This document shows, piece by piece, positions 3,886 to 52,600 of a stretch of DNA of 64,000 bases. The position numbers and the translations under genes are program-made. The notes below the pieces were generated by a model, which made no database searches, had not been told where the DNA came from, and was given only the letters and a program-made list of their open reading frames with translations. The stretch is from Macrostomum lignano (Eukaryota): the NCBI GenBank assembly GCA_002269645.1, contig NIVC01000008.1:8998-72997 (forward strand), read 5' to 3'. Within the stretch, counting starts at the first letter, position 1. The number at the start of each line of letters is the position of its first letter.

Positions 3886-4365
<480 letters not shown>

Positions 4366-5269
4366 GACAGACTTTCTTGATCGACTGCACCCCGATCGCA
4401 GTCACAACAGAAGCCCAAAACAAAGCACAGTCCGCTAAGGTCGCGACCCCAGAATCCGCAGCTCCCTTGTCAGGTCAGGCATCTGTGACACGGGAAATTT
4501 GGTCAGCTGGTCAGATGATGTATCGCTGTTTATACAAAACACACCCGCTTAACACTTTTCACCGTGATACGCAGCAGCTGCGAGCCCCATCTCATGGCTC
4601 AGAGTATGAATATTCAATAAACGGGGCTCGCCAGCCGTAAAGCGCAGCCGCCGATCGTCCCCAACTGTTCACGTGAGCCCAAGGCAGGGCAGTCTGATTC
4701 CGCAACTTTTTATCCCGGCCGATACTGCAGAGAAGCAGCGGACGGAGCCGAAGCTCATGCAATATTAAATACGGCCTATTTTCAGCCAAAAGGGGCAACG
4801 ATGCCTCAACCCCACCTCCAAGAGACCTCCCGCTGCCTCCTTCCTTGGACCGTTCAAGACGAGGACGTCGTCCCCCTAGCCATAAAGTTCCAGCGCTGAT
4901 CTGAATGCGCGGCTGAGAAAGGACTGCGCCAGGGGATCTGTCCTCGCTTGACCTTCCGTGTTTCTCTCCAGCCATCAATCTGACCCTCTGTGTCAGTCTG
5001 CCTGTGTCCGCACCCCTGTGTCCGCACCCCTGTGTCTCTGCCTTCTGTTTGTGTCTGTTCCTCTGTGACTGTCAGTGTCTGTGTCTGTACTCACGTGTCT
5101 GTCATGTGTCTGTGTCTGTACCCACGTATCTGTCATCTGTCTGTGTCTCAACCCCCGTGTCTGTCATGTGTCCGTGTCTCTGACGTGTCTGTGATGTGTC
5201 TGTCAGGTGCTGACTGTCATGGTCTCCCAGGACGAACTGGCCGAGGCAACTGCAAAGCTCCTGGCACAA

Positions 5270-6757: not shown

Positions 6758-7330
6758 GTGAATGGATTGCTAATCTAGCCAACGAAAATGAAGGAATAGA
6801 ATGGATTGCTAATCTAGCCAACGAAAATGAAGGAATAGAATGGATTGCTAATCTAGCCAACGAAAATGAAGGAATACAATGGATTGCTAATCTAGCCAAC
6901 GAAAATGAAGGAATAGAATGGATTGCTAATCTAGCCAACGAAAATGAAGGAATAGAATGGATTGCTAATCTAGCCAACGAAAATGAAGGAATACAATGGA
7001 TTGCTAATCTATAGCCAATACAAATGAATTAGAATAGAATGGATTGCTAATCTAGCCAAGGAAAATGAAGGAATACAATGGATTGCTAATCTAGCCAATA
7101 CAAATGAAGGAATAGAATGGATTGCTAATCTAGCCAATGCAAATGAATTGGAATAGAATGGATTGCTAATCTAGCCAATACAAATGAAGGAATAGAATGG
7201 ATTGCTAATCTAGCCAATGCAAATGAATTGGAATAGAATGGATTGCTAATCTAGCCAACGAAAATGAAGGAATAGAATGGATTGCTAATCTAGCCAATAC
7301 AAATGAATTGAAATAAAATGGATTGCCAAT
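6758..7330. repeat. 39-bp minisatellite (GAATGGATTGCTAATCTAGCCAACGAAAATGAAGGAATA)
   Basis: About 14 units. Confidence 0.95.
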
Positions 7331-7672
7331 CTCTATCCCCGATTTTGAAAGACATACCGCAATGGAAAGTAAGTTTAGTTGTTCTTTTACGCGTAGTCAT
7401 CCAGTATTTAGGTTAGTGACAGCAGCAGATTTTATCTGTGACGAAGCTGATGATGATGACTAATCGGTGAAGTACATTGTAATCGGGAACCAAGTGTGTT
7501 GCATGACATACCTTTAGCGTTAAGCCGGCTGCTTAGTAATCGTCAGCAGTCAAATTCCAATGCACATGTCAGCCACCCCATTATGCACGTGTGGCATAAA
7601 TTAGTCACCCCTGTTTACATGAATGTACACTGCAGCGTCACAAAACACATTGGTCAGACCCGCGTTTGCGTG

Positions 7673-7679
7673 TATAAAA
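7673..7679 (+). promoter_or_regulatory. TATA box of the secreted IL-17-like gene
   Basis: TATAAAA about 75 bp upstream of ATG 7750; AATAAA at 8731-8736 downstream of the stop. Confidence 0.55.
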
Positions 7680-7749
7680 TACGAGGCGCTATGCTACGAG
7701 AGTAACCCCCGTAAAAAGTGACCAGAATTACAGTTTCCAGATAGCAAGC

Positions 7750-8589
7750 ATGACTAAAGTTTCGAGAGCATTGACTTCTCCGCCTCTCATGCTGCTGCTG
7801 CTGCTGCTGCTGGCGGCTGCTCAGCAAGTGCGGCCTCAAATTCACGGCTACCCAGTGCCGCAGCCTGGCCATCATCCGCCACCGAAGCGTCTGCCAACCA
7901 CAGCGCGCGAAGCCCGCCAGATTCTCAACGTGAGCAGCAGCATCAACTGTCACTCAGGCTCCCCGGCAGAGGAGCCGCAGTTCCTGTTCGACCACCTGTG
8001 CCCCACTAAATTCCTGGCAACCGACGGTCCGCCAGCAGCAGGGAATCGACGCGATGCCGCGGGGATTCCAATCCACCGGGTGCAGCGCTCCACCTGCGCC
8101 TGCTCAGGACAGCGGGGAGTCAAGACTAACAGCGGCGGCGCCTCCTGTGTCACAGTGAAGCTGCCGGTCACGGAGCTGCAGCCGCTGCCCATCGACGGTG
8201 ACTCGTCGGGCAGGCCACGCTTCGTGGAGACCGTCCAGCTGCAGCAGGTCGGCTGCGCGGCCGTCCTGGAGTCGCTTGCCGCCGACGCCAACAGAGACAT
8301 TGTGCTGACTGGCAAGGACCTCCGCGACGCTAGACGCTCCCTATCCGGTGCCGAGCTGTTCCGCCCGGCCGTCTGCTCGCCCTCTGTGTCGCCGAGGACC
8401 GCGGCGCCGTCCTACAGCGTTCGCGTGAATAAGCAGCTGCGCCCGATGATTCGGCCGGTGGCCCGCTGCTACTGCCCCGGCCAGGTGCCCGTGATGCTGC
8501 CGATCACGGTGCTGCGGCTCATGCCGGGCGGTCAGCTGCGCGACGACGTTGAGACGGTGAGCGTCGGCTGCGCCGTGCCAGCGGAATGA
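7750..8589 (+). CDS. Secreted 279-aa protein with two tandem IL-17-like cystine-knot domains
   Basis: Single GC-rich ORF with signal peptide (MLLLLLLLAAA). Two internal copies of the pattern C..P/R.P..(A)xCxC...V..P(I/V)..L...VGC: HLCP..IPIHRVQRSTCAC..CVTVKLPVTEL..QQVGCAAV and SPRTAAPSYSVRVNKQLRPMIRPVARCYC..VPVMLPITVLR..ETVSVGCAV. The CDS is well supported; the family call is motif-based. Confidence 0.75.
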   Translation: MTKVSRALTSPPLMLLLLLLLAAAQQVRPQIHGYPVPQPGHHPPPKRLPTTAREARQILNVSSSINCHSGSPAEEPQFLFDHLCPTKFLATDGPPAAGNRRDAAGIPIHRVQRSTCACSGQRGVKTNSGGASCVTVKLPVTELQPLPIDGDSSGRPRFVETVQLQQVGCAAVLESLAADANRDIVLTGKDLRDARRSLSGAELFRPAVCSPSVSPRTAAPSYSVRVNKQLRPMIRPVARCYCPGQVPVMLPITVLRLMPGGQLRDDVETVSVGCAVPAE

Positions 8590-10340
8590 CATCTGAGTGC
8601 CAAGCGGAACTATTCATCATTTAGCCACCGTGAATATTTATTACTGCATGCATGCACAGACATCGAGCACAAAACCAATACTCTCGTAGCTTGCGTGCAT
8701 ATTTTTCGAAGCGTTTTTATTACAATTCAAAATAAAATGACTTTACTCGCTTCATACTATTGACTTGGCATGTAGTTAGTAGTTTAGAATAGAGTAATGT
8801 CTTTTATTACAAGAAACAACACAAGAAACGCAGAGTACTTAGCCCAATGTTTTAGCCGGCAACATAATGACCGATTTATTTTTATTAGTCCACAGGTGTT
8901 TAGACCATTAAAACAGAGCTTAGCTTACATTGACTGGGACAAACAGACAATGACAAGAATTTTATTCTAAACAAATAAAGTGCATCAAACTATTCGATTC
9001 TCAGCCTTAAAAAGTTTAATTACTGCATTTCCGAAACCAGAAGCTGGAGAGAAACACCACATCCGAGAGCAAACGTTTCTTAATAGCTAGTTTTATTTCA
9101 ACAAAAACAGCGCTCAGTCCACACGCATTTCTAGTTTTGGGCCTCGTTGGCACGCACAATTTTTACAGTGCAGGTTTTTTTTATTCTACTAAAAGTAACA
9201 AGGACAGAAAATTATAACGAATTTTTGCGAGTATATAACACAACAGGTCTCTAGCTTATACACTCTGCATTAGGCTGAACCACAAAGAATTCGATGGCGC
9301 CACTAATTCAATAAATCTAGCTATAATGGAAAGCTATAAATATAACAATAGCACTCAGATAACAGGCCGGTGAAATAAAAAGTAGGCGAACATTGCGCAC
9401 TAATTCAAACTGCTGGTCTGCGGAATTGACACCGAAAAAAAATTAATTAAACACACCGGAACTGCGACAGGTTTATATATTGATTAGCTTGAAACTGATG
9501 TATAGTAAATTAGTATAAATTTGCAATGAAGCAATGCGAAAGAGCCAATTGTTGGGAGGACCCACGGTAGAGCAGTACTGGAAGCGCAGAACTCACTGGG
9601 GGCCAGATAAAACACACAATCAGACACCCCAAGCTGCATGTCAGGTGATTAGAGCGGTGCGTGAGAATCCGACACCAGGAGAGCCCCCTCCCCACTGATT
9701 CCTCAAGACAAAAGCAAAGCGGAATTCGGAGAACTGCCGTTCCATTAGTTGTCAACTTTTCAAGCCAGTCCAGATTACTGTTTAGCTCAGTTGGGGCTTG
9801 GATGGCCCGATTCGAAATATGAATTATAATGACGCAGAAACGGGACAGTTGGTATTCGGTTAACGCTTAATTCGGTGCACATAAGGAGAGCCGGAGGTGC
9901 TGAACAGTTGGACCGAGGCCGCGCACACAGCCAGAATATCAATTATGGCTAGAATCCAAGAACAATAGCAAAATACAAGGTCAGAATGCTTCGTGTTTCG
10001 GTTTGCGCTGAATTATTTCAGAAATCGGGGGCTGGGAGGCGGGCTAATAACTGGTTTAAATTAACTCTTCTAATGCTACAATAGAACCAATTTAGCAACA
10101 TGCGAATAATTCAAACTAGCAAGCCGTAGTATTATAAACGGGCTCTGTATTTCCAAATAACAGTTAAACCATGCAAAAGCAAGCGAAACAATCAAGGGGG
10201 GAGGCAACAGCGCACACAAACACAGACAAACAAGTAGAACAAGAACAAAGACGAACAAAATTGTCAATCAAATATGAAATAACTTTATAGTTTAAAAGTC
10301 ATGCCGGGCTCCAGAGCCATAGGTGAATGTTGAACCCATT

Positions 10341-13300
10341 CTACAGCTCCTCCTTCTTCTTGTCGTCCTGGGACTCGGCACCCTGAAGTAACGATGGCTT
10401 GATTAAGAAACTGGAAGTAGGACTCTAAATAAGACAAAGCAAAATAACAGACGAGTGGGCACACTTACCGCATCCTTGACCTGCTTGCCGCCGGACTCCA
10501 GGAACTTCTTGAAGCCCTCCAGAGTGCGGTCGCCCTCGTAGTCGATGATCTCATCGGAGTTGGCTGGGAAGAACTTGATGGTGGGGAAGGACTGCACCTT
10601 GACGTCCTCGACCTCGTTGGCCGTGGAGTCCATCTTGGCGATGACGATGTTCTCGTGGTTCTTGTACTCCTCGCCCAGCTTGTCCCAGATCGGGGCCAGC
10701 TGCTTGCAGTGGCCGCACCAGGGAGCGTAGAACTCAACCAGCACGTTCTTAGTCTTGTCGCGGGCAACCTCGTTGAAGTTCTTGCCAACCAGCACCTTGA
10801 CGGGCTCCTTGTCCCAGTCGGCCGGCACTTCCTGGGACATGAGGTGCGGCTTCAGCTTGCCGTCCAATACGCTCTGCACAAACTGGGCCAAGTTGTCGGC
10901 GGTGATGTCGGTAAACTCCGGCTTGTACTTGACCATGTCCTCGTCCAGGGCGATGAATCGGACGGCCGGGCAATCCTCTTTCTTCAGGCCGAAGAACTCC
11001 AGAATGCGCTCGTTATCCTCGACACCGATGTCGACGTAGATGAACAGAGCCTTGCCTGCGGAGGAAGCGGTTGGTTTTTATATGAGAAACAATGCAACAT
11101 TGACTGAGTAACCATCTCTAGTAAGATCAGTGAAGCCATTACAGTTTACAATAGAGCCACAGTGTGTTAGCCCAGTGTTGTTACTAAGGAACAACAACGA
11201 CAAGACAATTGAAAAAATAGTTTGTGAAACAGGAATATGGGGTTCCTCTCAACATCTGACAAGGAAATACTCAATAGTTACAAAGCATATAAATGGAAGA
11301 CAGGAGAGATAATAGCAACCTCAACCTTTAATTATATCACTTTACCTCTCTTCTTCCCCAAAGCCAACAAATTGGCAGCAGATCAATGCAATTTGATTGG
11401 CATACTGGGACATAGTTGACCAAATATTTGGTCTGGATAAAAAATCAGTGGAAACGTAGGTGGGTTAGAAAGGATTGATTTGAGAGACAACCAGTTCACT
11501 GATCAGTTGTGGAGACCTCAAAAGCAAACTTGACTCACCCTTGAACTGCTCAGCGGGAGCCTTCAACTGGTCCATGATGTTGGAGAACTGGGCCTCGTCC
11601 GATTTCTTCAGGAACACGAGCAGGTGCTTCTTAACATCGCCGCCAAAGATGTCGCCAGCGGTCTCCTGGGTGAACTCGTTGATCAGGGGCAGCTTGTTGT
11701 TCTTGACAAACTTGGCGACCTCATCAGCAGTGAAGGGTCCAGTATAGGGGATCCTGGCGCCGTCGGTCTTCTTGAACAGCATGACAGTGTCCTGGTCGAC
11801 CTTGAATTCGGCCATGATATCGGCGCTGTCAGCCATACCGCAGGGGATGTCCTCCAGCTTGGAGAAGGCGGCATCCTCATAGCTCTTAGCACTGTCTGAG
11901 GTGGTGTCCTTGAAGAATCCAATCACAGTAATTTCCTTGTCATTGATGAACTTCTGGGCAGCATCCACAGAGTCCAGGCGCTGGGTAGGTGGGCCAAGCT
12001 TCTTCTCTAGCCAGGAAATGATGGTGTCAGCAGTGCGGCCGCCACTGTATTCAATGGGAGTCTGCTCCTTGAAAAACTTGATAGTTGGGTAGCCTTGCAC
12101 ACCATACTTCTCAGCCAGTTTGCCCTCAACAGTGGCATCAACCTTGGCCAGCTTGATCTCAGAGTTCTTTTCCTTTAGCTGTTGAGCAGCCTTGGCATAC
12201 TCTGGAGCCAGAGCCTTGCAATGACCACACCATGGGGCATCTAAAAAAGAAATCAATATATATAGCTAATTAATTTTTTTAAATAAATAGTAATATCATA
12301 TTCAAGCTGCCTAGATGAGATAATTAAAATGTTTATAAGTATATGGAAAATTCTAACTTGGGAAGCCCTATTTTTTATACTAAAACTAAAAGCAATGCTT
12401 ATAAAATTATTGGCAATCATTTACTTTAGGAAATTTAATTTCTTGAAAGTTTATGGTTTGTTTGAGTGAATGCAAAATGATGTTTAAAATGAATTATTGG
12501 CATAATCTTTAATTAAAATTAGGTATGCACAGTTAGGGTACATCACTCCTAAGAAAATACTATGCATGCAATGCCATGCACACATGGCATGCACTTTATA
12601 GAATCACGCATAAGAGTTATTATGAAGTAGAAAAAAATGAAAGTTAATTTATAAGCATAAATTTTAATTTTGCCAATTTTTTCAAGCTTGTAAGAAGCAT
12701 TTAAAGAAATATTTGCCTGTATCAATTTTTGCTATAAATAATATTGCCAAAAAACATAAAAATCAACTAAATTATTTGCAAATAAAGGCACATTTTTAAG
12801 AATAGGTGTGCACTAAATTTTTTTCAGCATGCATTTGTAACTATTTAATTTTTTTTGGGCATGCACCCAGCATGATTTGGACAATGGGATATAATAGACT
12901 CATAACACAAGCAGTTACAAAACTTAATGAGCTTAATAAACCACAAAGTCAAAATCTATAGCTAGCCACCTATTTGCATATTACTATATTAATTCATTGT
13001 TAAATTATTGTTTATCTATTAGACCATCCATTCACCAGTTTCATTAGTTGACAATTGACAATCTTAGTCAATCTATCCATTGAAACTCATCAATTTATCA
13101 ATTTGATTGAATCTGCCTTTAATAAAAGATTCTTAGAAATTTAGGACTAAAGTCAATGAAGAATACAATTAAATATGCAAAAGTTAAAGATTGTTAATTT
13201 TTCCATTAAAGTATTATTATTAGAGTATGATTAATATATTATATTTTTTTATGCATTGCATTGCATATTATACAATATTCAATTAGGCCCTAGTCTAATA

Positions 13301-17764: not shown

Positions 17765-20098
17765 TTAAATAAGAAATATATGGCAGACCATCACGACAAA
17801 AGTCGAGTTAAATCTGCAATGCATCGCTCGAACAATCGAATTACTGACGCCGCCGTCAAGACCGCCGAAGCGGGTTAGCCACGACAGCCGACTGTCTCTG
17901 TAGCTGTCCGCTTGCTCGCCAACGGTGACCAAGATGACCGCCTTCCGATGGCGTCGGCCGCTGCCAATCAATCCAATATTTTCCAACGCCTTCAGAGCGT
18001 CCACAACGAGAGTTGCAGCGATGCTTCGACCTTCCAGTGGACTGCAGCTGTCGGCAAGGCGTCGCTCTAGAATAGCGGAAAAGTCAGCCATGGCGGCGTC
18101 AGTCGCGGCCGCAACAGCCGCATAGGACATTGCGTCCACAACCTGCTTGAGCAGCTGGCTGCGCAGCCGAGGTCCGGGATCGTTGTCCAGCAGGTCTGCT
18201 TCAGCAACTCGGTCCAAGGACTCTAAGGACTCCGAAGCAACATAATGCGACTGACGCTGCAGTATCCGCCGATAGAGTTGCGACAGTTTGTGCGAGTCAT
18301 CTTCTGCAGATAGCACTCGATCCGAGTGTGCGGCTGCGGCAGTGGTTAAATAGCGGTTTTGAGAGCTGAACTTTTCCAATGCTGCTTCGAGAAATATTGC
18401 GTCTGAACGATCGCGCTGACAATCAGCTTCCAAAGCTGTTCTTTCCTGACAAGTAGCTTCCGACGCTGCTCTTTCCTCACAAGTAGCTTCCGACGTTGTT
18501 CTATCCTCACAAGTAGCTTCCGACGCTGCTCTTTCCTCACAAGTAGCTTCCGACGTTGTTCTTTCCTCACAAGTAGCTTCCGACGTTGTTCTTTCCTCAC
18601 AAGTAGCTTCCGACGTTGTTCTTTCCTGACAAGTAGCTTCCGACGTTGTTCTTTCCTCACAAGTAGCTTCTGACGCTGCTCTTTCCTGACAAGTAGCTTC
18701 CGACGTTGTTCTTTCCTCACAAGTAGCTTCCGACGTTGTTCTATCCTCACAAGTAGCTTCCGACGCTGCTCTTTCCTGACAAGTAGCTTCCGACGTTGTT
18801 CTTTCCTCACAAGTAGCTTCCGACGTTGTTCTTTCCTCACAAGTAGCTTCCGACGTTGTTCTTTCCTCACAAGTAGCTTCCGACGTTGTTCTTTCCTCAC
18901 AAGTAGCTTCCGACGTTGTTCTATCCTCACAAGTAGCTTCCGACGTTGTTCTTTCCTCACAAGTAGCTTCCGACGTTGTTCTTTCCTCACAAGTAGCTTC
19001 CGACGTTGTTCTTTCCTGACAAGTAGCTTCCGACGTTGTTCTTTCCTCACAAGTAGCTTCTGACGCTGCTCTTTCCTGACAAGTAGCTTCCGACGTTGTT
19101 CTTTCCTCACAAGTAGCTTCCGACGTTGTTCTATCCTCACAAGTAGCTTCCGACGCTGCTCTTTCCTGACAAGTAGCTTCCGACGTTGTTCTTTCCTCAC
19201 AAGTAGCTTCCGACGTTGTTCTTTCCTCACAAGTAGCTTCCGACGTTGTTCTTTCCTCACAAGTAGCTTCCGACGTTGTTCTTTCCTCACAAGTAGCTTC
19301 CGACGTTGTTCTTTCCTCACAAGTAGCTTCCGACGCTGCTCTTTCCTGACAAGTAGCTTCCGACGTTGTTCTTTCCTCACAAGTAGCTTCCGACGTTGTT
19401 CTTTCCTCACAAGTAGCTTCCGACGTTGTTCTTTCCTCACAAGTAGCTTCCGACGTTGTTCTTTCCTCACAAGTAGCTTCCGACGTTGTTCTTTCCTGAC
19501 AAGTAGCTTCCGACGTTGTTCTTTCCTCACAAGTAGCTTCTGACGCTGCTCTTTCCTGACAAGTAGCTTCCGACGTTGTTCTTTCCTCACAAGTAGCTTC
19601 CGACGTTGTTCTATCCTCACAAGTAGCTTCCGACGCTGCTCTTTCCTGCCAAGTAGCTTCCGTCGACGCTGTTCTTTCCTGACAATCATCTTCCGACGCT
19701 GCTCTTTCCTGACAAGTAGCTTCTGACGCTGCTCTTTCCTGACAAGTAGCTTCCGTCGACGCTGTTCTTTCCTGACAATCATCTTCCGACGCTGCTCTTT
19801 CCTGACAAGTAGCTTCCGACGTTGTTCTTTCCTCACAAGTATCTTCCGACACAGGTTTGTCCTGAAAAATAGCATCCGATGCTGTTTTGCTCTGACAAAC
19901 CTCTGACACAGTTCTTTCTTGACAAGCAGCTGAATCTGAAGCGCATTCGCCTTGGCTCGCAGCTTCAGAATCTTTTGCCAGCGCCAGCAGGTAGTCAGCA
20001 GGCGGCGACAGCTGTCGTGATGAAGAGGACGGCTGTAGAACATCATCCACGCAGTCAGCTCGATGGCCAGGCATTTCGTCTCTTTTGTGGCTTATCAA
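17765..20098 (-). CDS. Hypothetical acidic protein with ~45 copies of a Cys-containing decapeptide (EATCEERTTS)
   Basis: 777-aa ORF. The 30-bp array (~18425-19830) grades into degenerate in-frame copies on both sides, followed by ~220 aa of GC-rich, non-repetitive, helical-looking sequence. True start and exon ends are uncertain. Confidence 0.55.
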   Translation of the reverse strand: MISHKRDEMPGHRADCVDDVLQPSSSSRQLSPPADYLLALAKDSEAASQGECASDSAACQERTVSEVCQSKTASDAIFQDKPVSEDTCEERTTSEATCQERAASEDDCQERTASTEATCQERAASEATCQERAASEDDCQERTASTEATWQERAASEATCEDRTTSEATCEERTTSEATCQERAASEATCEERTTSEATCQERTTSEATCEERTTSEATCEERTTSEATCEERTTSEATCEERTTSEATCQERAASEATCEERTTSEATCEERTTSEATCEERTTSEATCEERTTSEATCEERTTSEATCQERAASEATCEDRTTSEATCEERTTSEATCQERAASEATCEERTTSEATCQERTTSEATCEERTTSEATCEERTTSEATCEDRTTSEATCEERTTSEATCEERTTSEATCEERTTSEATCEERTTSEATCQERAASEATCEDRTTSEATCEERTTSEATCQERAASEATCEERTTSEATCQERTTSEATCEERTTSEATCEERTTSEATCEERAASEATCEDRTTSEATCEERAASEATCQERTALEADCQRDRSDAIFLEAALEKFSSQNRYLTTAAAAHSDRVLSAEDDSHKLSQLYRRILQRQSHYVASESLESLDRVAEADLLDNDPGPRLRSQLLKQVVDAMSYAAVAAATDAAMADFSAILERRLADSCSPLEGRSIAATLVVDALKALENIGLIGSGRRHRKAVILVTVGEQADSYRDSRLSWLTRFGGLDGGVSNSIVRAMHCRFNSTFVVMVCHIFLI

Positions 20099-22077: not shown

Positions 22078-27088
<5,011 letters not shown>

Positions 27089-36100: not shown

Positions 36101-39100
36101 CCATCTTAGTGTCTAACTTAGTGTCCGTCTTACGACGTATTGTCCATATTAGTGTCCGTCTTAGTGTCCATCTTAGTGTCCATCTTAGTCTTAGTCTTAG
36201 TCTTAGTCAATGGAGTCAATTAGTCTTAGTCTTAGTCTTAGTCTTTGTGTCAGTCTAAGTGTCCATCTTAGTCTCAGGGCCCTACCAATGAAGATTGTTT
36301 CAGCCAATGCCAGCTTCAATCCCTCTCCATTCTGCTCACAATTTCCTCATCAATATCACAAAATGCAAAGCTAAACGCAGTTTTTGTTAAGGGTGACCCT
36401 CAGGAATGCAAGATGGAGTGCAGATTCCATGAGCCCGGTCTGACAGGCCCACTTGACTTGGCAGACTGGTTCCTTCCCTCTGCCTGCCGCACTCGAGTCA
36501 TGAGCTTGTTGCCATTCTCACACCCAGCTCACCGCCTTTCTCTCTAACTATCTCTCTCGCCCATCGCCCTCCGTGTGGACTGGCAAAAAGCAATCATTTA
36601 TCTCCATCTTCGGCTCTGTCTCACTCTTTTGCTACACAGAAGAGAGCCTGCATCAAGAAGCTGGAAGAGGATCTGGCCAGCCTGCGAGACGGTTGCAACC
36701 GGCTGAGTGCGGCTTCTTCGCAGCAACAGCAGAAGAAACAATCCAAGCCAGAGCCCCACCAGGAGCCGCAAAACCACCAAGAGCGGCCACAAGAAACTCG
36801 AAGCTCGCCTAGATTTGAGCAAAGCATTCGCGACGAAATTTTGTCGCAGGTAATTACTGCGATTAATGAATGCTGCTTCAAGAGTACTATTAGTAGTAAA
36901 ACTAAAACTAATTCAATATTCGTCCATCTATGGAAGGTCAACGAAGGTCAAGGCCTGAGCTGCGGCGGCCCGAGTCCGTTCTGCGGCAAGGCGACGGCGA
37001 TGCGGCGTGGCGCCCCAGAGTCACTTGACGTGTCAAAACTGATGGGTGAGATGTCTAGATTTTCAAGCTTCTCTAAAGCTCTGTGTAATCCACTAGCATA
37101 CTGGGGCATCAACAGAGGAGCGAGATCTGTACCGCCAGCAGCTGCACGAGGCCTCGGAGCGGATGCGATCCACTGCTGGCCTGATTCGCCACGGCCTGCT
37201 GGAGAAATTCAACGCGCTCGAGAGACAGGTGCGGCTGGAGAGGCGAGAGAACTGCCGGCTGGCTGAACAGGTGACTTTGTGGGCCTAATGGTGCTGGGGC
37301 TGCGGCTGCTGACATGTCTGTGGCTGTGGCTACGGCTGCTGACATGTCTGTGGCTGTGGCTGTGGCTGTGGCTGTGGCTATTACTGACATGTCTGTGGCT
37401 GTGGCTGTGGCTGTGGCTGCTGACATGTCTGTGGCTGGGGCTGCGGCTGCTGACATGTCTGTGGCTGGGGCTGTGGGTGTGGCTATTACTGACATGTCTG
37501 TGGCTGTGGCTGTGGCTGTGGCTGTGGCTGTGGCTGCTGACATGTCTGTGGCTGGGCTGCGGCTGCTGACATGTCTGTGGCTGGGGCTGTGGCTGTGGCT
37601 ATTACTGACATGTCTGTGGCTGTGGCTGTGGCTATTACTGACATGTCTGTGGCTGTGGGTGTGGCTATTACTGACATGTCTGTGGCTGTGGCTGTGGCTG
37701 TGGCTGCTGACATGTCTGTGGCTGGGGCTGCGGCTGCTGACATGTCTGTGGCTGGGGCTGTGGCTGTGGCTGTGGCTATTACTGACATGTCTGTGGCTGT
37801 GGCTGTGGCTATTACTGACATGTCTGTGGCTGTGGCTGTGGCTATTACTGACATGTCTGTGGCTGTGGCTGTGGCTATTACTGACATGTCTGTGGCTGTG
37901 GCTGTGGCTATTACTGACATGTCTGTGGCTGTGGCTGTGGCTGTGGCTATTACTGACATGTCTGTGGCTGTGGCTGTGGCTGTGGCTGTGGCTATTACTG
38001 ACATGTCTGTGGCTGTGGCTGTGGCTATTACTGACATGTCTGTGGCTGTGGCTGTGGCTATTACTGACATGTCTGTGGCTGTGGCTGTGGCTATTACTGA
38101 CATGTCTGTGGCTGTGGCTGTGGCTACTACTGAAATGGCTGTGGCTGTGGCTGTGGCTGCTGACATGTCTGTGGCTGTGGCTGTGGCTATTACTGACATG
38201 TCTGTGGCTGTGGCTGTGGCTACTACTGAAATGTCTGTGGCTGTGGCTGTGGCTGCTGACATGTCTGTGGCTGGGACTTCTGACATGTTTGTGCCTGGTT
38301 CTAATGGCAACTACTTTAAAATAAGAACCACAAAACTTTCTTAGTTGCTTGAAAAAAATATTTATGCATATAATCATAAATTTCTGCCGCTTGAAGCAGC
38401 AACTAGTTCAAATGTATTTCTTCATATAATTATACCGCAATACGTGTAAGACACAGTGGGGCAAGCAAACGCATGCACAAATCAAGCGCAGAAAGAAGAG
38501 GCAATGGGAAAAGCATTCAATTTAGCAGGCAAAGCTATATGAAAGAAATGATTCTGCATATTAATTGCACTACGAGACGCAATACGGAAGTAAAAATCAG
38601 TCAAAAGCAGAGAAAACAGTTATGAAATTCAGTGCTGATCGGTGCACTTCAGAGCTCAAGTCATCCTAATTTGGGCAGCGACGGCAGCTCAGTCGACCTC
38701 CTCGACGGTGGGTCCGCCCGCTCGTCCCGCTCGCTGCGGACCCTGCGGAGGCGGCTGCTGCTGCTGCTGATGCAGCTTGGCCATGAGAGGCGAGCACAGG
38801 CTGCTCAGCTGCCGCTGCTGTTCGGCGATCTCGTCCTTGTCGGCCGTCTGGTTGTTCTCCAGCCAGGAGATGACGCGGTCGCAAGCGGCGGTCACCTCGC
38901 CGGCCTCCTTCTCGCCCAGCCGGTCCTTGCAGTCGTTGGCCGCCTGCTTGTACTGGAAGGCGAGCGATTCCAGCTGGTTGCGGGCCGCCAGGCGCTCGCG
39001 GTGCCGCTCGTCCTCCTCGCGGAACTTCTCCGCGTCCCGCACCATCCGCTCGATCTCGTCCTTCGACAGGCGACCCTTGTCGTTCGTGATCGTGATCTTC

Positions 39101-41088
39101 TCCTCCTTGCTGGTGCTCTTGTCCTTCGCCGACACCACCAGGATTCCGTTGGCGTCTACGTCGAAGGTCACCTCGATCTGCGGGACTCCGCGCGGCGCTG
39201 GCGGGATGCCGTCCAGGTTGAACCGGCCCAGCAGGTGGTTGTCCCTGGTCAGCGCCCGCTCGCCCTCAAACACCTGCACCGTGACGCCGCTCTGGTTGTC
39301 CGAGTACGTGGTGAACGTCTGCGTCGCCTTGGTTGGGATGCGGCTGTTCCTCTCCACGATCTTGGTCATCACGCCGCCGGCAGTCTCGATGCCCAGCGAC
39401 AGCGGAGCCACGTCAAGCAGCAGCAGGTCTTCGATCTTCTCGTCCTTCACACCGGTCAGCACCGCCGCCTGCACCGCGGCTCCGTACGCGACCGCCTCAT
39501 CCGGGTTGATCGACTTGTTCAGCGTCCGGCCGCCCATGAACTCCTGCAGCAGCTTCTGCACCTTCGGGATCCTCGTCGATCCGCCGACCAGAACAATCTC
39601 GCTGACGCTGCTCTTGTCCATCTTGGCGTCCCTCAGCGCTCGCTCCACCGGCTCCATCGTCTGACGGAAGAGGTCAGCGCACAGCTCCTCGAACCGAGCC
39701 CTGGTCACGCTGGTGTAAAAGTCGATGCCCTCGAACAGCGAGTCGATCTCGATGCTTGCCTGCGCTGAGCTGCTCAGAGTTCGCTTCGCTCGCTCAGCCG
39801 CTGTGCGCAGCCGCCTCACTGCTCGGGCGTTGCCGCTCATGTCCTTGCGGTACTTGCGCTTGAACTCCTGGATCAGGTGCTCCACCAGCCGGTTGTCAAA
39901 GTCTTCGCCGCCCAAATGAGTGTCACCGGCCGTCGATCGCACCTCGAACATGCTGCCCTCCGACACCGTCAGGATGGACACGTCGAATGTGCCGCCTCCC
40001 AGGTCGAAGATCAGAATGTTCTTCTCGCCGTCCAGGCTCTTGTCCAGCCCGTAGGCCAGGGCAGCCGCCGTCGGCTCGTTCACAATCCGCAGCACATTCA
40101 GCCCGGCGATCGCGCCAGCGTCCTTCGTCGCTTGCCGCTGGCTGTCGTTGAAGTAGGCCGGCACCGTGATCACCGCGTCAGTCACCTTCTCGCCGAGGTA
40201 CGCCTCCGCCGTCTCCTTCATCTTGGTCAGCACCATGGCCGAGATCTCCTCCGGGTAGAAGCTCCGCCTCTCGCCCATGTACTGAACCTCGATCTTCGGC
40301 CGCCCACCGTCGTTCGCCACCTTGAACGGCCACAGCTTCATGTCCCGCTGCACCGTCTCGTCGCTGAACTTCCTCCCGATGAGTCGCTTGGCGTCGAACA
40401 CCGTGTTCTCCGGGTTCATCGCCACCTGGTTCTTTGCCGCGTCGCCCACCAGCCTCTCCGTGTCCGTGAAGGCCACGTAGCTGGGCGTGGTTCGGTTGCC
40501 CTGGTCATTGGCGATGATCTCCACTTTGCCTGCCTGGAACACGCCCACGCACGAGTACGTGGTGCCCAGGTCGATGCCGATTGCAGGTCCGTTGCTCCTC
40601 TTGCCCATGATGCTTCTTCACTGAGCTGAGCTTGACTGAGAAAGAGGCTTCTTCACTGAGGAAGGCTTGTCTTGCTTTGGATGCTTTTGGATTGCTTTGG
40701 TTGCGATCCGAACTGCTTGCTCCTGGGCCAGCAGGACCGCCTGCTTTTATAGACTGCAGCTCAGCTTCGAGAAATTTCCAGAATTCCCCATTCACGCCGT
40801 CACACGTTGGCCCTCTGCTTCGCTGTGCTATTTTTAGAACACCGATTCTCGAATTTTCTCTACTAGTAGAACCCACTAACAATAATTAAAGTCACATTCG
40901 CTGCAGTTACTGAAAGTAGAAATATATAGTTATGTGTATATTTTTGTATTTCCCTTTGCAAAAATTGACTAGAAAGTGCCTTTACAATTACATTGCATGT
41001 ACATTGCAGCTCAAGCGTTGCCACAGCAGACAGACAAGCGCCTTCAGCGACAGCGCCTGTCAAGTCGGCGAGCCCTTCTTGCGGTCAG
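33196..41088 (+). CDS. Multi-exon coiled-coil protein, probably the N-terminal half of the IRAG/LRMP-like gene (partial model)
   Basis: Phase-compatible exons: 33196-33260 (or 33727-33758), 34080/34128-34574, 34981-35191, 36640-36849, 36937-37045, 37116-37270 and 41010-41088. Heptad segments such as [19 protein letters not shown] and [15 protein letters not shown]. No stop codon before the 3.7-kb intron; further probable exons at ~41829-41902, 42028-42125 and 42629-42851. Confidence 0.7.
35425..36270. repeat. 12-bp intronic minisatellite (TTAGTGTCCATC) with higher-order blocks
   Basis: The interruption ACGACGTATT recurs at ~35722, ~35946 and ~36132. Confidence 0.92.
37285..38290. repeat. Compound (GTGGCT)n + ATTACTGACATGTCT minisatellite, intronic
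   Basis: Begins 15 nt after the donor at 37270. Confidence 0.93.
38689..40608 (-). CDS. HSP70: Cytosolic heat-inducible HSP70 (639 aa, intronless)
   Basis: [24 protein letters not shown] and [14 protein letters not shown] signatures; C-terminal GPTVEEVD; no introns, no GGMP repeats; HSEs upstream. Confidence 0.98.
40745..40751 (-). promoter_or_regulatory. TATA box of HSP70
   Basis: TATAAAA on the minus strand, ~140 bp upstream of the ATG and 14 bp from the HSE. Confidence 0.85.
40765..40784. promoter_or_regulatory. Perfect 4-unit heat shock element
   Basis: cTTCgaGAAatTTCcaGAAt = alternating nGAAn pentamers. Confidence 0.92.
40845..40859. promoter_or_regulatory. Second heat shock element (3 units)
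   Basis: aTTCtcGAAttTTCt. Confidence 0.85.
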
Positions 41089-43221: not shown

Positions 43222-46200
43222 GACCAGCAGGAGCACGAGCGCTACCTGCAGGATCTTGTACGCCGGCCCGTGCAGCAGGAGGACGCCAGCCTCACCGACG
43301 AGGACAGGCAGCGGAACTCGCTGCTCCTGCGCCAGGCCGCCGAAGCCAGCAGCCGTCAGAGGGAGGACAGCACCGCCTCGTCACCAGACAACTCGCCCCG
43401 GCACAACAACCGGCCAAGCAGGACTTCTTCGTCGTTTTTGTCGTCGCTGAAGGTCTCTATTGGCTTCTGGAGGGGGATGGACCCTCCCTGAACCCGATCC
43501 CGCAGCAGGAGTCACACAGACCCTCTCTGAACCCGATCCCGCAGCAGGAGTCACACAGACCCTCCCTGAACCCGATCCCGCAGCAGGAGTCGCACAGACC
43601 CTCTCTGAACCCGATCCCGCAGCAGGAGTCACACAGACCCTCTCTGAACCCGATCCCGCAGCAGGAGTCGCACAGACCCTCTCTGAACCCGATCCCGCAG
43701 CAGGAGTCGCACAGACCCTCCCTGAACCCGATCCCGCAGCAGGAGTCACACAGACCCTCTCTGAACCCGATCCCGCAGCAGGAGTCGCACAGACCCTCCC
43801 TGAACCCGATCCCGCAGCAGGAGTCACACAGACCCTCTCTGAACCCGATCCCGCAGCAGGAGTCGCACAGACCCTCCCTGAACCCGATCCTGCAGCAGGA
43901 GTCACACAGACCCTCTCTGAACCCGATCCCGCAGCAGGAGTCAGACTACAGCCTGTGGAGCCGGTCGGAGACCGCCGGGGCTTCACTCTCAGCTGACGAG
44001 TTCTCCGGGTCGCAGTCGCAGGCCGATCAGTCTCAAGATGCGGAGGTGGCAGCGGCACCTTCGCAGCCCAGAGAAGCATCGAAGGCGGACCAGCTGGTGC
44101 CGTTCCCCTCGCTGCCGAACTCCAGGCTGCACTCCCTGTCCCTGCTGCCGGCCTCTCTGTCCGACTTGGACGCCAGGAACGGCTCCGTGTCCTTAATTGA
44201 CCCGAGCCGACGATTCCGCCTAGACGACATCCCGGACACGGAGCTGGAGGACCGGGTTCGCGCCCTAGCCATCTCCTTCTCCAATGACGCCACCACCCTG
44301 GTAGTTCGGGTCAAGCGGCTGTTCCTGGCCCGGACAAACCAGGAGCAGGACATCAGCTCGGAGCTGCAGGCCCTGGAGTCCGACCTCGCCAAGGCCAACT
44401 CGGGCGAGCAGCTGCCGCCGACCTCATCGAGGTTCGTCGTGCTCAGAGAGCTGCTGGAGAAGCTCAACAGGACGTCGGAGATTCTCGGAGCCGTGCAGCA
44501 GGTCGGTGAACTTGACGAATGGGAGACATCGTTGTTTCTTTGAAAAATTTAAAGGCTGGGTTCGCTCAAACAACCAGCGATTTCCTGACACCCGAACAGG
44601 AGAGCCGCTTGAACTACGCGTTTCACCTGATGCTGAAGCACATGGAGCTGCTCAAGGAGGACAAGGAGAAGTTGACGGTGGAGCTGGAGCAGATGAGGCC
44701 AGTGAAAACTCCTTGATGCAGATCATTGAATTATAATTCTGTTATATTTATCTGATCGCTATCTACCAAATATAGGCAAGCGATGGATGAAGGAAAATTC
44801 TACATGCCGGATGAAGACCTGATGAGCAAGCGGTCCAAGTCCGTCATTGGAGCGGCCAGTCAGAAGGTGCTGTCGGCTTATCAATGCTCACCCTCTCCAA
44901 GTCCAGTCTCACCCTCTCCCAGTCCAGTCTCACCCTCACCTAGTCCAATCTTATCCTATCATAATCCAGTCTCACCCTCACCTAGTCCAGTCTCACCCTC
45001 ACCTAGTCTAGTCTCACCCTCACCTAGTCCAGTCTCACCCTCTCCTAGTCCAGTCTCACCCTCACCTAGTCCAGTCTCACCCTCTCCCAGTCCAGTCTCA
45101 CCCCTCCCAATCCTGTCTCACCCTCTCCTATTCCAATCTTATCCTATCATAATCCAGTCTCACCCTCTCCAAGTCGTCTCACACTCTCCCACTCCAGTCT
45201 CACCATCGGCCTCACCTATTCCAATCTTATCCTATCATAATCCAGTCTCACCCTCTCCCACTCCAGTCTCACCCTCTCCCAGTCCAGTCTCACCCTTTCC
45301 CAGTCCAGATTCACCCTCACCTATTCCAATATTATCCTATCATAATCCAGTCTCACCCTCTCCCAGTCGAGTCTTACATCTCCCAATCCAGTCTCACCCT
45401 CTCCCAATCCAGTCTCACCCTCTCCCAATCCAGTCTCACCCTCTCCCCGTCCAGTCTCACCCTCTTCTAATCCTGTCTCACCCTCACCTATTCCAATCTT
45501 ATCCTATCATAATCCAGTCTCACCCTTTCCCAGTCCAATCTCACCCTCTCCCAGTCCAGTCTCACACTCTGCCACTCCATCTCCCCTCCCGTAGCAGGAG
45601 AGCCAGCGCAGCAAGTTCCAGGATCTCGGCCGAACCGTGGCCAGAACTTCGTCCATCACGTCGCTGCGCAGGAGGATGTCACGTGATCTAAAGAGCGCGG
45701 AGGATCCAGACGGGTAAGTAGGAAGGGAAGATTTCGGACTCAGAAGATTTATGATTAATGAAGTAGATTTCAGAGGATTAGATATCAGTAGATAGATGTC
45801 CGGATCGGTACAGCAGATGTCAGGAGGTACAGCAGATGTCAGGAGGTACAGCAGATGTCAGGAGGTACAGCAGATGTCAGGAGGTACAGCAGATGTCAGG
45901 AGGTACAGCAGATGTCAGGAGGTACAGCAGATGTCGGGAGGTACAGCAGATGTCAGGAGGTACAGCAGATGTCAGGAGGTACAGCAGATGTCAGGAGGTA
46001 CAGCAGATGTCAGGAGGTACAGCAGATATCAGGAGGTACAGCAGATGTCAGGAGGTACAGCAGATGTCAGGAGGTACAGCAGATGTCAGGAGGTACAGCA
46101 GATATCAGGAGGTACAGCAGATGTCAGATTGTCAGGAGGTACAGCAGATGTCAGGAGGTACAGCAGATGTCGGGAGGCACAGCAGATGTCAGGAGGTACA

Positions 46201-47334
46201 GCAGATGTCGGGAGGTACAGCAGATGTCAGGAGGTACAGCAGATGTCGGGAGGTACAGCAGATGTCAGGAGGTACAGCAGATGTCAGGAGGTACAGCAGA
46301 TGTCGGGAGGTACAGCAGATGTCAGGAGGTACAGCAGATGTCGGGAGGTACAGCAGATGTCAGGAGGTACAGCAGATGTCAGGAGGTACAGCAGATGTCA
46401 GGAGGTACAGCAGATGTCAGGAGGTACAGCAGATGTCGGGAGGTACAGCAGATGTCAGGAGGTACAGCAGATGTCGGGAGGTACAGCAGATGTCAGGAGG
46501 TACAGCAGATGTCAGGAGGTACAGCAGATGTCAGGAGGTACAGCAGACGTCAGGAGGTACAGCAGACGTCAGGAGGTACAGCAGATGTCGGGAGGTACAG
46601 CAGATGTCAGGAGGTACAGCAGATGTCGGGAGGTACAGCAGATGTCAGGAGGTACAGCAGATGTCAGGAGGTACAGCAGATATCAGGAGGTACAGCAGAT
46701 GTCAGGAGGTACAGCAGATGTCGGGAGGTACAGCAGATGTCAGGAGGTACAGCAGATGTCAGGAGGTACAGCAGATGTCAGGAGGTACAGCAGATGTCGG
46801 GAGGTACAGCAGACGTCAGGAGGTACAGCAGATGTCAGGAGGTACAGCAGATGTCAGGAGGTACAGCAGATGTCGGGAGGTACAGCAGACGTCAGGAGGT
46901 ACAGCAGATGTCAGGAGGTACAGCAGATGTCGGGAGGTACAGCAGATGTCGGGAGGTACAGCAGATGTCGGGAGGTACAGCAGATGTCAGGATGCCACAC
47001 CCACAGAAGAGACGGCTCCAAAGACAGCAAGAAGTGGAAGATCGAGGAGGAGATTTACCAGTCCGGCTTCGAGCGCGGAGTCCGCATGTCAACCAGCCAG
47101 CAGTTGTCGCAGCTCAAAACTGAGCAGGCGGCCTTCTCCGACCAGCTCGAGCGGCTGATGGACAGGCAGCACCTGACGGAGGCCGAGGAGGCCGACCTTG
47201 ACCGGCTCACTTCTGATTGGCTGGGCGACAAGCGCCTGCGGCTGTTCCTGGCGCCCTGCACTCTGCTGGCAGTAACGGCACTACTCATCTGGGCCATCGC
47301 CTACCCCGTTGCCAAGCAGTTGCTGGGTCGATGA
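43222..47334 (+). CDS. IRAG/MRVI1/LRMP-like IP3-receptor-associated tail-anchored coiled-coil protein (C-terminal part)
   Basis: Exons 43222-43452, 43938-44501, 44600-44697 (GC donor), 44776-44866, 45595/8-45713 and 47007-47334 join in frame. AISFSNDATTLVVRV, SEILGAVQQESRLNYAFHLMLKHMELLK, RRRMS and IEEEIYQSGFERG resemble vertebrate IRAG1 motifs recalled as [43 protein letters not shown], RRRVS and MEEEAYSKGFQEG. C-terminal TM LLAVTALLIWAIAYPV. Confidence 0.8.
43480..43945 (+). repeat. 39-bp VNTR containing the splice acceptor of the next exon
   Basis: Unit GAACCCGATCCCGCAGCAG|GAGTC(A/G)CACAGACCCTC(T/C)CT; 12 CAG|GAG sites from 43508 to 43937. Confidence 0.93.
44885..45570. repeat. Degenerate pyrimidine-rich minisatellite (CCAGTCTCACCCTCTC), intronic
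   Basis: Direct reading. Confidence 0.85.
45805..46990. repeat. 19-bp minisatellite (CAGATGTCAGGAGGTACAG) filling the last intron of the IRAG-like gene
   Basis: About 60 units. Confidence 0.96.
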
Positions 47335-49617: not shown

Positions 49618-52600
49618 ATGCAAAAATTCAAGTTTGATATTTTCTTGATGTCATGCGTTTTAGCCTGCATCAATATTCAAGGTAAGACTAAAGGCAAAAA
49701 TGACTTCTTGGTCAAAAGCACTGAGTAGCCTCGCCTGTTAGACAGTAGCCTCACCTGTTAGACAGTAGCCTCACCTGTTAGACAGTAGCCTCACCTGTTA
49801 GACAGTAGCCTCACCTGTTAGACAGTAGCCTCACCTGTTAGACAGTAGCCTCACCTGTTAGACAGTAGCCTAACCTGTTAGACAGTAGCCTCACCTGTTA
49901 GACAGTAGCCTCACCTGTTAGACAGTAGCCTCACCTGTTAGACAGTAGCCTCACCTGTTAGACAGTAGCCTCACCTGTTAGACAGTAGCCTCACCTGTTA
50001 GACAGTAGCCTCACCTGTTAGACAGTAGCCTCACCTGTTAGACAGTAGCCTAACCTGTTAGACAGTAGCCTCACCTGTTAGACAGTAGCCTCACCTGTTA
50101 GATAGTAGCCTCATCTGTTAGACAGTAGCCTCACCTGTTTGACAGTAGCCTCACCTGTTAGACAGTAGCCTCACCTGTTAGATAGTAGCCTCATCTGTTA
50201 GACAGTAGCCTCACCTGTTAGACAGTAGCCTCACCTGTTTGACAGTAGCCTCACCTGTTTGACAGTAGCCTCACCTGTTAGATAGTAGCCTCATCTGTTA
50301 GATAGTAGCCTCATCTGTTTGACAGTAGCCTCACCTGTTTGACAGTAGCCTCACCTGTTAGATAGTAGCCTCATCTGTTAGATAGTAGCCTCCTCTGTTA
50401 GACAGTAGCCTCACCTGTTAGATAGTAGCCTCCTCTGTTAGACAGTAGCCCCGCCAACTGACTGCCACCACAATTCCTCAAGCCTCAGCCGCGGCCACCT
50501 CGGTTGTCCACTTCGATGCAGTCCAGCCAGCAGAGCCGGCGGCAGGCGGCAGCTGCACACCGCCAGCTGCATCATCGTCAATCAACGGCAGCTGCCTTCG
50601 GTGCGCCGCGGCGGCAGCAGTTCGCCGAGCTCACTACCTCCGCTGTGGTGCCGGCGAGACCGGCTGCTTCCTGGCGGACGCGCCGCTGTGTGCGGGCGCT
50701 GACGGGCGGGTCTATCGGAGACGGTCGGGTGAGCAGACTGATGGGGCGGCGGTCGGGTTTTAGCTGTAAAATTTGGAATAAAATACATATCGGTTGTTAG
50801 AAAAACAAGGACTTACGCTCGCCGTCAGGGATTCTTAAATGTAGTTTAAGAACCAGAACCAGAACCAGCACCAGGGGCGCCAGCACCAGGGGGCGCCAGC
50901 ACCAGGGGGCGCCAGCACCAGGGGGCGCCAGCACCAGGGGGCGCCAGCACCAGGGGGCGCCAGCACCAGGGGGCGCCAGCACCAGGGGGCGCCAGCACCA
51001 GGGGGCGCCAGCACCAGGGGGCGCCAGCACCAGGGGCGCCAGCACCAGGGGGCGCCAGCACCAGGGGGCGCCAGCACCAGGGGGCGCCAGCACCAGGGGG
51101 CGCCAGCACCAGGGGGCGCCAGCACCAGGGGGCGCCAGCACCAGGGGGCGCCAGCACCAGGGGGCGCCAGCACCAGGGGGCGCCAGCACCAGGGGGCGCC
51201 AGCACCAGGGGGCGCCAGCACCAGGGGGCGCCAGCACCAGGGGCGCCAGCACCAGGGGGCGCCAGCACCAGGGGGCGCCAGCACCAGGGGGCGCCAGCAC
51301 CAGGGGGCGCCAGCACCAGGGGGCGCCAGCACCAGGGGGCGCCAGCACCAGGGGGCGCCAGCACCAGGGGGCGCCAGCACCAGGGGGCGCCAGCACCAGG
51401 GGGCGCCAGCACCAGGGGGCGCCAGCACCAGGGGGCGCCAGCACCAGGGGGCGCCAGCACCAGGGGGCGCCAGCACCAGGGGGCGCCAGCACCAGGGGGC
51501 GCCAGCACCAGGGGGCGCCAGCACCAGGGGGCGCCAGCACCAGGGGGCGCCAGCACCAGGGGGCGCCAGCACCAGGGGGCGCCAGCACCAGGGGGCGCCA
51601 GCACCAGGGGGCGCCAGCACCAGGGGGCGCCAGCACCAGGGGGCGCCAGCACCAGGGGCAACAGGTATCAGGGGTGCTTTTCCAGATATATATATCAGAT
51701 ACGTGTGCATATATAGTCACGCTATACCATTAATTTCAAGTTCCTACATGTACATTCGAAATATTTTTTGGACAAAATCGGAAAATCCAGCGGGTCCGGA
51801 GACCTTCGGCTACGAGGCTGTTGTCGACAGCGGCCAGCGCTTCTGGGTGTTCCAGCAGAGACGGAGCGGCCGGGTCGACTTTGCCAGAAACTGGACCGAC
51901 TATGAGACAGGCTTCGGGACTGCGGACGACTTTTGGAGCGGTTAGTCAGCAATTTTACCCCTCACCACTCCATTAGTGTACGAGTACACTCCTCACCCCC
52001 CATCAATGTACACTCCTCACCATTTATCAAATGTACACTCCTCACCATTTATCAAATATCCACTCCTCACCACTCATCAATGTACACTCATCAATGTACA
52101 CTCCTCACCACTCATCAATGTACACTCCTCACCACTCATCAATGTACACTCCTCACCACTCATCAATGTACACTCCTCACCACCCCATCAATGTACACTC
52201 CTCACCACTCATCAATGTACACTCCTCACCACTCATCAATGTATACTCCTCACCACTCATCAATGTACACTCCTCACCACTCATCAATGTACACTCCTCA
52301 CCATTTATCAAATGTCCACTCCTCACCACCCCATCAATGTACACTCCTCACCACTCATCAATGTACACTCCTCACCACCCCATCAATGTACACTCCTCAC
52401 CACTCATCAATGTACACTCCTCACCACTCATCAATGTACACTCCTCACCACTCATCAATGTACACTCCTCACCGCTCATCAATGTACACTCCTCACCACT
52501 CATCAATGTACACTCCTCACCACTCATCAATGTACACTCCTCACCACTCATCAATGTATACTCCTCACCACTCATCAATGTACACTCCTCACCACTCATC

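Follow-up and report, generated by a model that had tools for sequence, protein, structure and literature searches.

Nucleotides (nt) 7673-8736 of a 64,000-nt stretch of the Macrostomum lignano genome (GenBank contig NIVC01000008.1, positions 8,998 to 72,997, forward strand; hereafter the window) form a compact, gene-like unit on the plus strand, with an open reading frame (ORF) at 7750-8589. In our preferred interpretation, held with moderate confidence, this unit is a compact Macrostomum gene with one exon, whose secreted product would contain two tandem, highly divergent modules of the interleukin-17 (IL-17) cystine-knot type, derived from one another by internal duplication. Considered by halves, the C-terminal half of the protein is probably a very divergent IL-17-type domain and the N-terminal half its decayed internal copy. 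The elements of the gene and of its predicted product (aa, amino acid positions) are as follows.

7673-7679, plus strand: TATA box-like element TATAAAA, 71 nt 5' of the ATG, its role assigned from position only.
7750..8589, plus strand: single-exon coding sequence of 279 codons, taken from the ORF list, with 10 cysteines in the mature part.
7750..7821, plus strand: signal-peptide-like N-terminus, aa 1-24, MTKVSRALTSPPLMLLLLLLLAAA, recognized by inspection, with probable cleavage between AAA and QQ.
7822..7890, plus strand: segment rich in Pro and His, aa 25-47, with the dibasic pair K46-R47 at its end, a putative processing site.
7927..7935, plus strand: N60-V-S, the sole N-glycosylation sequon in a regular-expression scan of the protein.
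7948..8274, plus strand: domain 1, aa 67-175, apparently a diverged copy of domain 2.
8275..8373, plus strand: inter-domain linker, aa 176-208, with R192-D-A-R-R196 (nt 8323-8337), a minimal RxxR/dibasic pattern and putative cleavage site.
8374..8586, plus strand: domain 2, aa 209-279, IL-17-like by Pfam IL17 and hhalign.
8731-8736, plus strand: putative polyadenylation signal AATAAA, 142 nt 3' of the stop codon.

By direct reading, the ATG at 7750 lies in the context AGCATGA, with an A at -3, and the frame continues uninterrupted over 279 codons to a TGA at 8587-8589. Farther upstream, some 14 copies of a 39-nt unit form a minisatellite (6760-7332) that stops approximately 340 nt 5' of the TATA box. 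A first-pass annotation of this DNA had described an intronless invertebrate ORF flanked by a TATA box and a polyadenylation signal and beginning with what looks like a signal peptide; all of these elements are present at the coordinates listed above, and the assignment to an invertebrate is borne out, as Macrostomum is a free-living flatworm. Base composition supports the view that 7750-8589 is indeed one coding exon. The GC content of the ORF is 0.66, compared to 0.37-0.39 in the flanking DNA; in 60-nt bins it lies between 0.58 and 0.78 in all ORF bins from 7810 on and between 0.27 and 0.45 in the flanks, and the fall coincides exactly with the stop codon. GC content at the third codon position (GC3) is 0.77. 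When codon usage was scored with parameters trained on the other genes of the window, the annotated frame was the best of the six (0.29), with the other five at 0.13 or less. No AT-rich, intron-like GT..AG segment was found inside the ORF.

These properties bear on the possibility that the ORF is non-functional, having either arisen by chance in GC-rich DNA or been left behind as a dead gene copy that is not expressed. When the 840 nt of this GC-rich sequence are shuffled by mononucleotide, the full-length frame stays open in 0.65% of the shuffles, and database searches returned neither the exact protein nor similar ones, M. lignano entries in UniProt included, while the HSP70 protein encoded in the same window finds M. 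lignano at 98% identity. We nevertheless consider a non-functional ORF most improbable, since the frame is intact from the signal peptide to the C-terminal domain, the codon bias is specific to that frame with its high GC3, the GC island ends precisely at the stop codon, the TATA box and AATAAA lie at sensible distances, and the protein has an even number of cysteines and a structured internal repeat.

The N-terminus, MTKVSRALTSPP-LMLLLLLLLAAA-QQ, displays on inspection the charged, hydrophobic and small-residue regions found in signal peptides: K3/R6 are followed by LMLLLLLLLAAA and then by small amino acids in positions -3 and -1. A helix at residues 11-25 is predicted in both AlphaFold2 (AF2) runs. 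The N-terminus matches the textbook signal-peptide pattern, and the protein looks secreted. RxxR or dibasic sites occur at aa 46-47, 53-56, 100-101, 110-113 and 192-196 (RDARR). They include the two noticed at first pass, the KR that follows the Pro/His-rich N-terminal segment (K46-R47) and the DARRSL of the linker, where the sequence reads R192-D-A-R-R196-S-L and AF2 predicts a low-confidence helix at 188-197.

We searched the full protein and shorter constructs against 24,736 Pfam models at E<=10. IL17 (PF06083) was the sole family reported, and it was reported for every construct containing domain 2, with E values of 0.28, 0.058, 0.019 and 0.0089. For comparison by hhalign, a reference alignment was made with MAFFT from the six human IL-17 paralogues only; these sequences were checked, IL-17A being identical to PDB 5hi3 and all six scoring 72-111 bits over the full length of PF06083. 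Domain 2 (aa 200-279) matched this alignment with 85.4% probability (P 5.8e-6, score 33.1) over 54 columns, pairing aa 222-275 (nt 8413-8574) with template columns 12-81 of 86. Composition-preserving shuffles of domain 2 (n = 600) scored 10.7±2.4, the highest reaching 22.6, and 11.6 was obtained with the sequence reversed, so that the observed score lies about 9 standard deviations (SD) above the shuffles. With a hidden Markov model (HMM) built from the same six sequences, domain 2 obtained 8.1 bits and domain 1 obtained 5.2 bits, both in sensible registers.

The match appears to be specific to IL-17. Domain 2 showed no match by hhalign to NGF-family, TGF-β/BMP or VEGF sequences (scores 7.5-10.9). 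When both domains were compared to the NGF family, TGF-β and VEGF, hhalign scores ranged from 7.5 to 14.6, no probability exceeded 0.65%, and no such family appeared in the Pfam scan at E<=10. Human neurotrophins compared to the IL-17 alignment scored 14-23, under the 33.1 of domain 2. The key residues of domain 2 are Y222, P232, A238-R239-C240-Y-C242-P-G-Q245, V246-P-V...I252.VLR256 and E268.VSVGC274-A-V276. Three conserved motifs, in the order m1-m3-m2, have been described for IL-17 proteins (PMC4517768). Domain 2 matches 17 of their 41 positions (5+7+5) in that order, a partial agreement in absolute terms, compared to 12.4±1.0 (maximum 16) for 1000 shuffles; in motif 1 the match is ungapped, at Y222, P232, A238, R239 and C240. 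The resemblance of domain 2 to the IL-17 motif, originally claimed from alignment by eye, is thus backed by the only Pfam family found, at a sub-threshold score, by the hhalign match, and by the controls with shuffles and other families. We consider it likely that domain 2 is a true, remote homolog of IL-17.

Similarity between the two halves of the protein extends over a common core, [TR]-C-x-C-x-G-Q ... V-x-V-x-L-P-[VI]-T-x-L ... VETV ... VGCA. The two internal copies of a CxC...V..P(I/V)..L...VGC pattern in the original description are present, as C116-A-C118-S-G-Q ... V136KLPVTEL ... VGC169A in copy 1 and C240-Y-C242-P-G-Q ... V248MLPITVL ... VGC274A in copy 2, and the similarity of the halves exceeds that of shuffles. 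The Smith-Waterman score of half against half is 49, with shuffles at 27.8±5.0 and 13 of 5000 as high; when the two domains are compared by hhalign, 38 columns align with 50% identity (P 0.004-0.005), and 3 of 400 shuffles score as high. The duplication can also be recognized in the DNA, as two repeat copies.

8155..8189, plus strand: DNA repeat copy 1, encoding VKLPVTELQPLP, identical at 28 of 35 positions to 8491-8525.
8491..8525, plus strand: DNA repeat copy 2, encoding VMLPITVLRLMP, the partner of 8155-8189.

The offset of these copies, 336 nt, is in frame, and codon-preserving shuffles reached 22.2±0.9 identities with a maximum of 26, none of the 500 attaining 28. Judged from these alignments, of protein as well as of DNA, domain 1 is a true internal duplicate of domain 2. 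The original proposal of tandem IL-17-like cystine-knot domains therefore stands with regard to a real duplication and an IL-17-like C-terminal copy, but domain 1 by itself gives no IL-17 signal.

What links domain 1 to IL-17 is its relationship to domain 2 together with the placement of its cysteines, and this link is suggestive. Judged by eye and outside any alignment, C84-P-T-K-F sits where IL-17s have S/C-P-W-x-Y; C133-V-T-V falls on the Ser of N-S-V-P, in the six-sequence HMM alignment only. The serines of 'SPW' and 'NSVP' are, as the IL-17F structure paper reportedly shows, the knot positions at which Cys and Ser replace each other. Two knot positions are occupied by Cys in invertebrate IL-17s and by Ser in chordates (PMC4517768). 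When aligned to a profile of IL-17 plus domain 2, domain 1 matches over 69 columns and in the correct register, with D..R.P at one end, C.C.G and CV.V in between and VGC..V at the other. Of the 41 positions in the three IL-17 motifs, domain 1 matches 11, which is not above chance.

The protein might instead be an ordinary one-domain IL-17-like cytokine, in which the C-terminal 60-70 residues fold and, as in canonical IL-17s, dimerize between chains, and the N-terminal 150 residues are an extension or pro-region that carries a partial duplicate of strands 3-4 rather than a second module. Such an arrangement would be conventional, as IL-17 domains usually follow a variable N-terminal extension and occupy the C-terminus (PMC4517768), and it would fit the origin of the IL-17 profile signals in domain 2 only, the restriction of the strongest similarity between the domains to CxCxGQ-VGCA with a DNA repeat of 35 nt, and the occurrence of a dibasic/RxxR site between the halves, as in pro-protein ligands. 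The similarity, however, runs from the strand 2 CxC to the last knot Cys and hence beyond strands 3-4, the cysteines of domain 1 occupy the expected Cys1 (C84-P..F) and Cys4 (C133-V.V) positions, and the 69-column alignment keeps its register throughout. We therefore view a one-domain cytokine as unlikely.

The ten cysteines of the protein, an even number, are located at 67, 84, 116, 118, 133 and 169 in domain 1 and at 209, 240, 242 and 274 in domain 2. Those of domain 1 occur in the contexts C67, C84 (CPxxF), C116-x-C118-x-G-Q, C133 (CVxV) and VGC169. In the alignments, the position of Cys3 is occupied by Q121 and Q245, and that of Cys6 by A171 and V276; each domain retains only the first Cys of the terminal CxC, where the first-pass annotation had likewise counted a single Cys. 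Cys3 and Cys6, the two positions absent from both domains, are the partners of one disulfide (3/6). Hymowitz and colleagues are said to have reported in 2001 that the disulfides of IL-17F are C77-C124 (3/6) and C72-C122 (the other pair), a numbering that is self-consistent with the checked IL-17F sequence. A class of invertebrate IL-17s, T1C, keeps the 1/4 and 2/5 disulfides and has lost 3/6 (Chen et al. 2024, PMC11087794). Domain 1 would fit this pattern, its cysteines falling on positions 1 (C84), 2 (C116), 4 (C133) and 5 (C169) but not on 3 and 6, in an alignment that is statistically insecure. Domain 2 differs from the T1C proteins in that it lacks the 1/4 pair; with only 2/5 and one extra pair, it would lie outside the five types distinguished in PMC11087794. 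PMC9477748 gives no disulfide assignment for the middle Cys that IL-17B-E carry in 'CLC'.

A number of results weigh against the interpretation of the protein as two IL-17-type modules. The full protein scores 12.0 bits against PF06083 and the domain 2 constructs score 14.2, 15.8 and 16.8 bits, all below the gathering cut-off of 24 bits, and the match spans only positions 45-77 of the 81 in the model. In the same hhalign set-up, human IL-17 paralogues left out one at a time score 77-158, compared to 33 for domain 2, which makes the candidate far more divergent than any two of them. Viewed library-wide, over approximately 25,000 families, the Pfam and hhalign signals shrink to E ~0.01-0.1, which is borderline; because the IL-17 idea arose from spotting the same motifs, this is the honest significance for domain 2. 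For domain 1 alone, no Pfam match was obtained at E<=10, and its hhalign score against the IL-17 alignment, 10.8 (P 0.31), equals the shuffle mean; its comparison with the profile of IL-17 plus domain 2 is a weak link as well, at P 0.025-0.031 with 12 of 400 shuffles as high. The comparison of each half to PF06083 suggested at first pass has thus given a weak, sub-threshold match for domain 2 and none for domain 1, and a profile match is not absent from both halves, because one of them matches. Finally, the canonical knot has four cysteines (CxxxxC ... CxC, paired 2/5 and 3/6), and only Cys2 and Cys5 are found in each domain.

Searches for homologs point in the same direction. No homolog was found in a word-indexed search of 5.8 billion clustered proteins (E<=0.01), in an exhaustive phmmer search of 1.84 billion representatives (E<=0.001) or in a scan of metagenome contigs, and phmmer searches of PDB, for which both the full protein and domain 2 served as queries, returned nothing at E<=10. 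Since none of the collections searched yielded a homolog, conservation provides no support. The AF2 models, predicted from the single sequence without an alignment, are unusable, with a predicted local distance difference test (pLDDT) score of 34.7 for the full protein and 44.0 for aa 186-279; Foldseek comparison of the latter low-pLDDT model to PDB yielded nothing below E 1.7, which is noise. The structure predictions, as suggested at first pass, are thus uninformative rather than negative.

Within the window, tblastn detected no paralog of the candidate. In an exact look-up in a collection of 15 billion proteins, both the candidate and the exact HSP70 of the window were absent. As an M. lignano HSP70 with 98% identity was found while the exact HSP70 was absent, the gene set of the assembly or strain represented by the window lies outside these databases. 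M. lignano entries from UniProt are present in the database searched and the candidate was not returned, so that the gene is apparently unannotated there; it seems to be absent from the public M. lignano proteome. No literature was found that links IL-17 ligands to Macrostomum or planarians, and the main text of surveys of IL-17 evolution, figures and supplements aside, contains no mention of flatworms.

Alternatively, the protein might be a lineage-specific, fast-evolving secreted product (for example glandular, adhesive or seminal-fluid) that contains cysteines and an internal repeat and resembles IL-17 by chance or convergence. The protein is an orphan in all searches, every IL-17 signal is under the curated threshold, of the four cysteines that define the knot, two are missing, and the hypothesis was born of motif spotting by eye, so that the targeted hhalign P value overstates significance. 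The unbiased scan of the whole model library, however, surfaced IL17 alone, in four overlapping constructs with domain 2, and the hhalign score, far above those of shuffles, is specific when set against other cystine knots. The matches also fall on the most conserved positions of IL-17, in the published motif order, and both lost cysteines are partners of the same disulfide. On this evidence, we consider it improbable that the likeness to IL-17 is due to chance or convergence.

Under the interpretation of two IL-17-type modules, the protein might mature and act in the following manner. The signal peptide would be removed near the A24-Q25 junction. Each module would then form an IL-17-like four-strand unit held by Cys2-Cys5 (C116-C169 in module 1; C240-C274 in module 2), the Cys3-Cys6 pair having presumably been lost jointly in both (Q121/A171; Q245/V276). 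Module 1 may retain the ancestral invertebrate Cys1-Cys4 pair as C84-C133, and module 2 may have lost both this pair and the loop that connects strands 2 and 3. If the middle Cys of each CxC pairs with an upstream Cys, as C118-C67 and C242-C209, all ten cysteines would be paired. In cystine-knot ligands, the knot is where strand 1 starts and strand 4 ends; the packing of IL-17 protomers is parallel. With strand ends and packing of this kind, a linker of 33-45 residues (aa 176 to ~220) would suffice for intramolecular packing, and the two modules could associate into an obligate asymmetric pseudo-heterodimer. Cleavage of the linker between RDAR and R would convert the protein into two associated chains; K46R47 is a possible further convertase site. 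Outside the cell, the product could be a ligand of an IL-17R-type receptor. Taken together, these steps would describe a natural single-chain IL-17: two fused IL-17-fold modules forming an obligate asymmetric pseudo-heterodimer, with knots reduced to 2/5 only, plus 1/4 in module 1, and the first IL-17-type ligand described in Platyhelminthes, in a regeneration model amenable to genetics. This full proposal, read from sequence, is doubtful.

Several known systems can be compared to the candidate. Human IL-17A-F (PF06083) are likewise secreted, with the domain at the extreme C-terminus. Domain 2 has in common with the IL-17 family, in the same order, Y...P...A-[KR]-C-x-C-x-G, V-P-[IV]...I.VLR and E.V.VGC, with equal spacing in motif 1, and the middle Cys of 'CxCxG' is likewise present in IL-17B-E. 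The candidate differs from the family in the replacement of knot Cys3 and Cys6 by Q and by A/V, respectively, and in having two modules per chain. The 13-residue loop between strands 2 and 3 of IL-17A is absent from domain 2.

The premise of the first-pass annotation that IL-17s are single-domain proteins is not strictly true. Among the sea urchin gene models, Strongylocentrotus purpuratus SPU_022838.1 has two IL-17 domains and SPU_019350.1 has three (PMC4517768), so that more than one IL-17-type domain is likewise predicted per polypeptide. The sea urchin genome contains many IL-17 ligand genes in tandem arrays (PMC4517768). The multi-domain models derive from such tandem-array loci, whereas the candidate is one ORF with neither stop codon nor intron between the modules; because this ORF is uninterrupted, fusion of neighboring genes as a gene-model artefact is excluded for the candidate.

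The Trunk/PTTH/CFSH and neurotrophin-type cystine-knot ligands have been proposed to be relatives of IL-17 (PMC11087794). They are likewise secreted and of the cystine-knot type, and their pro-region is often removed at basic sites. Neither domain of the candidate matches the NGF-family, TGF-β or VEGF alignments, the scores being those given above. Human NGF itself scored 23.2 against the human IL-17 alignment in hhalign (P 0.0013, 71 columns); this faint score is in line with the proposed relationship between neurotrophins and IL-17 (PMC11087794).

The remainder of the window includes four other genes or exons with recognizable domains.

10406-10936 and 11468-12256, minus strand: protein disulfide isomerase (PDI)-like gene with two thioredoxin-domain exons.
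24088-24603, minus strand: calcineurin-like phosphoesterase (Metallophos) exon.
38692-40608, minus strand: intronless HSP70 gene, 98% identical to Macrostomum lignano HSP70 entries.
~52863-53243, plus strand: fibrinogen-C domain exon, the upstream 'ORF' being a 24-nt tandem array.

The PDI-like gene lies 1.8 kb downstream of the disulfide-containing candidate and is convergent with it, which is probably a coincidence. For the HSP70 protein, the next best matches have 83-84% identity, and those from other phyla have 76% or less. Three canonical heat-shock elements (GAAnnTTCnnGAA) are located at 40766-40858, 160-250 nt upstream of the HSP70 start. The window as a whole contains 4 matches to the heat-shock element, compared to 0.68 expected, and none of 100 shuffles reached 4. 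The region upstream of HSP70 looks like a classical inducible hsp70 promoter. Scans of the window with Rfam and for tRNAs were empty.

The density of micro- and minisatellites in the window is extreme, with 40 TRF rows that score at least 200; examples of arrays are 18425-19850, 45794-46992, 50865-51658, 37318-38273, 2166-2417 and 3886-4371. Most six-frame ORFs longer than 250 aa are translated tandem repeats and not genes. As such ORFs are common in the window, the candidate was also considered as a translated tandem repeat; this was rejected, as TRF shows no array in 7750-8589.

IL-17 ligands are dimers, and the pairing of protomers decides which receptors are engaged. If the interpretation as two fused modules is correct, a gene that hard-wires two different IL-17-type modules would yield an asymmetric ligand ready for use. 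Such a gene would further illustrate the extent to which a cystine knot can shrink, possibly to one knot disulfide in one module. Very divergent cytokines evade standard annotation, and the candidate has no match in any protein database searched. IL-17-type signaling would be extended to the flatworms, a group not discussed in the text of the surveys mentioned above. Macrostomum lignano serves as a model in work on regeneration, stem cells and transgenesis, in which a role of such a ligand in wounding or infection would be directly testable.

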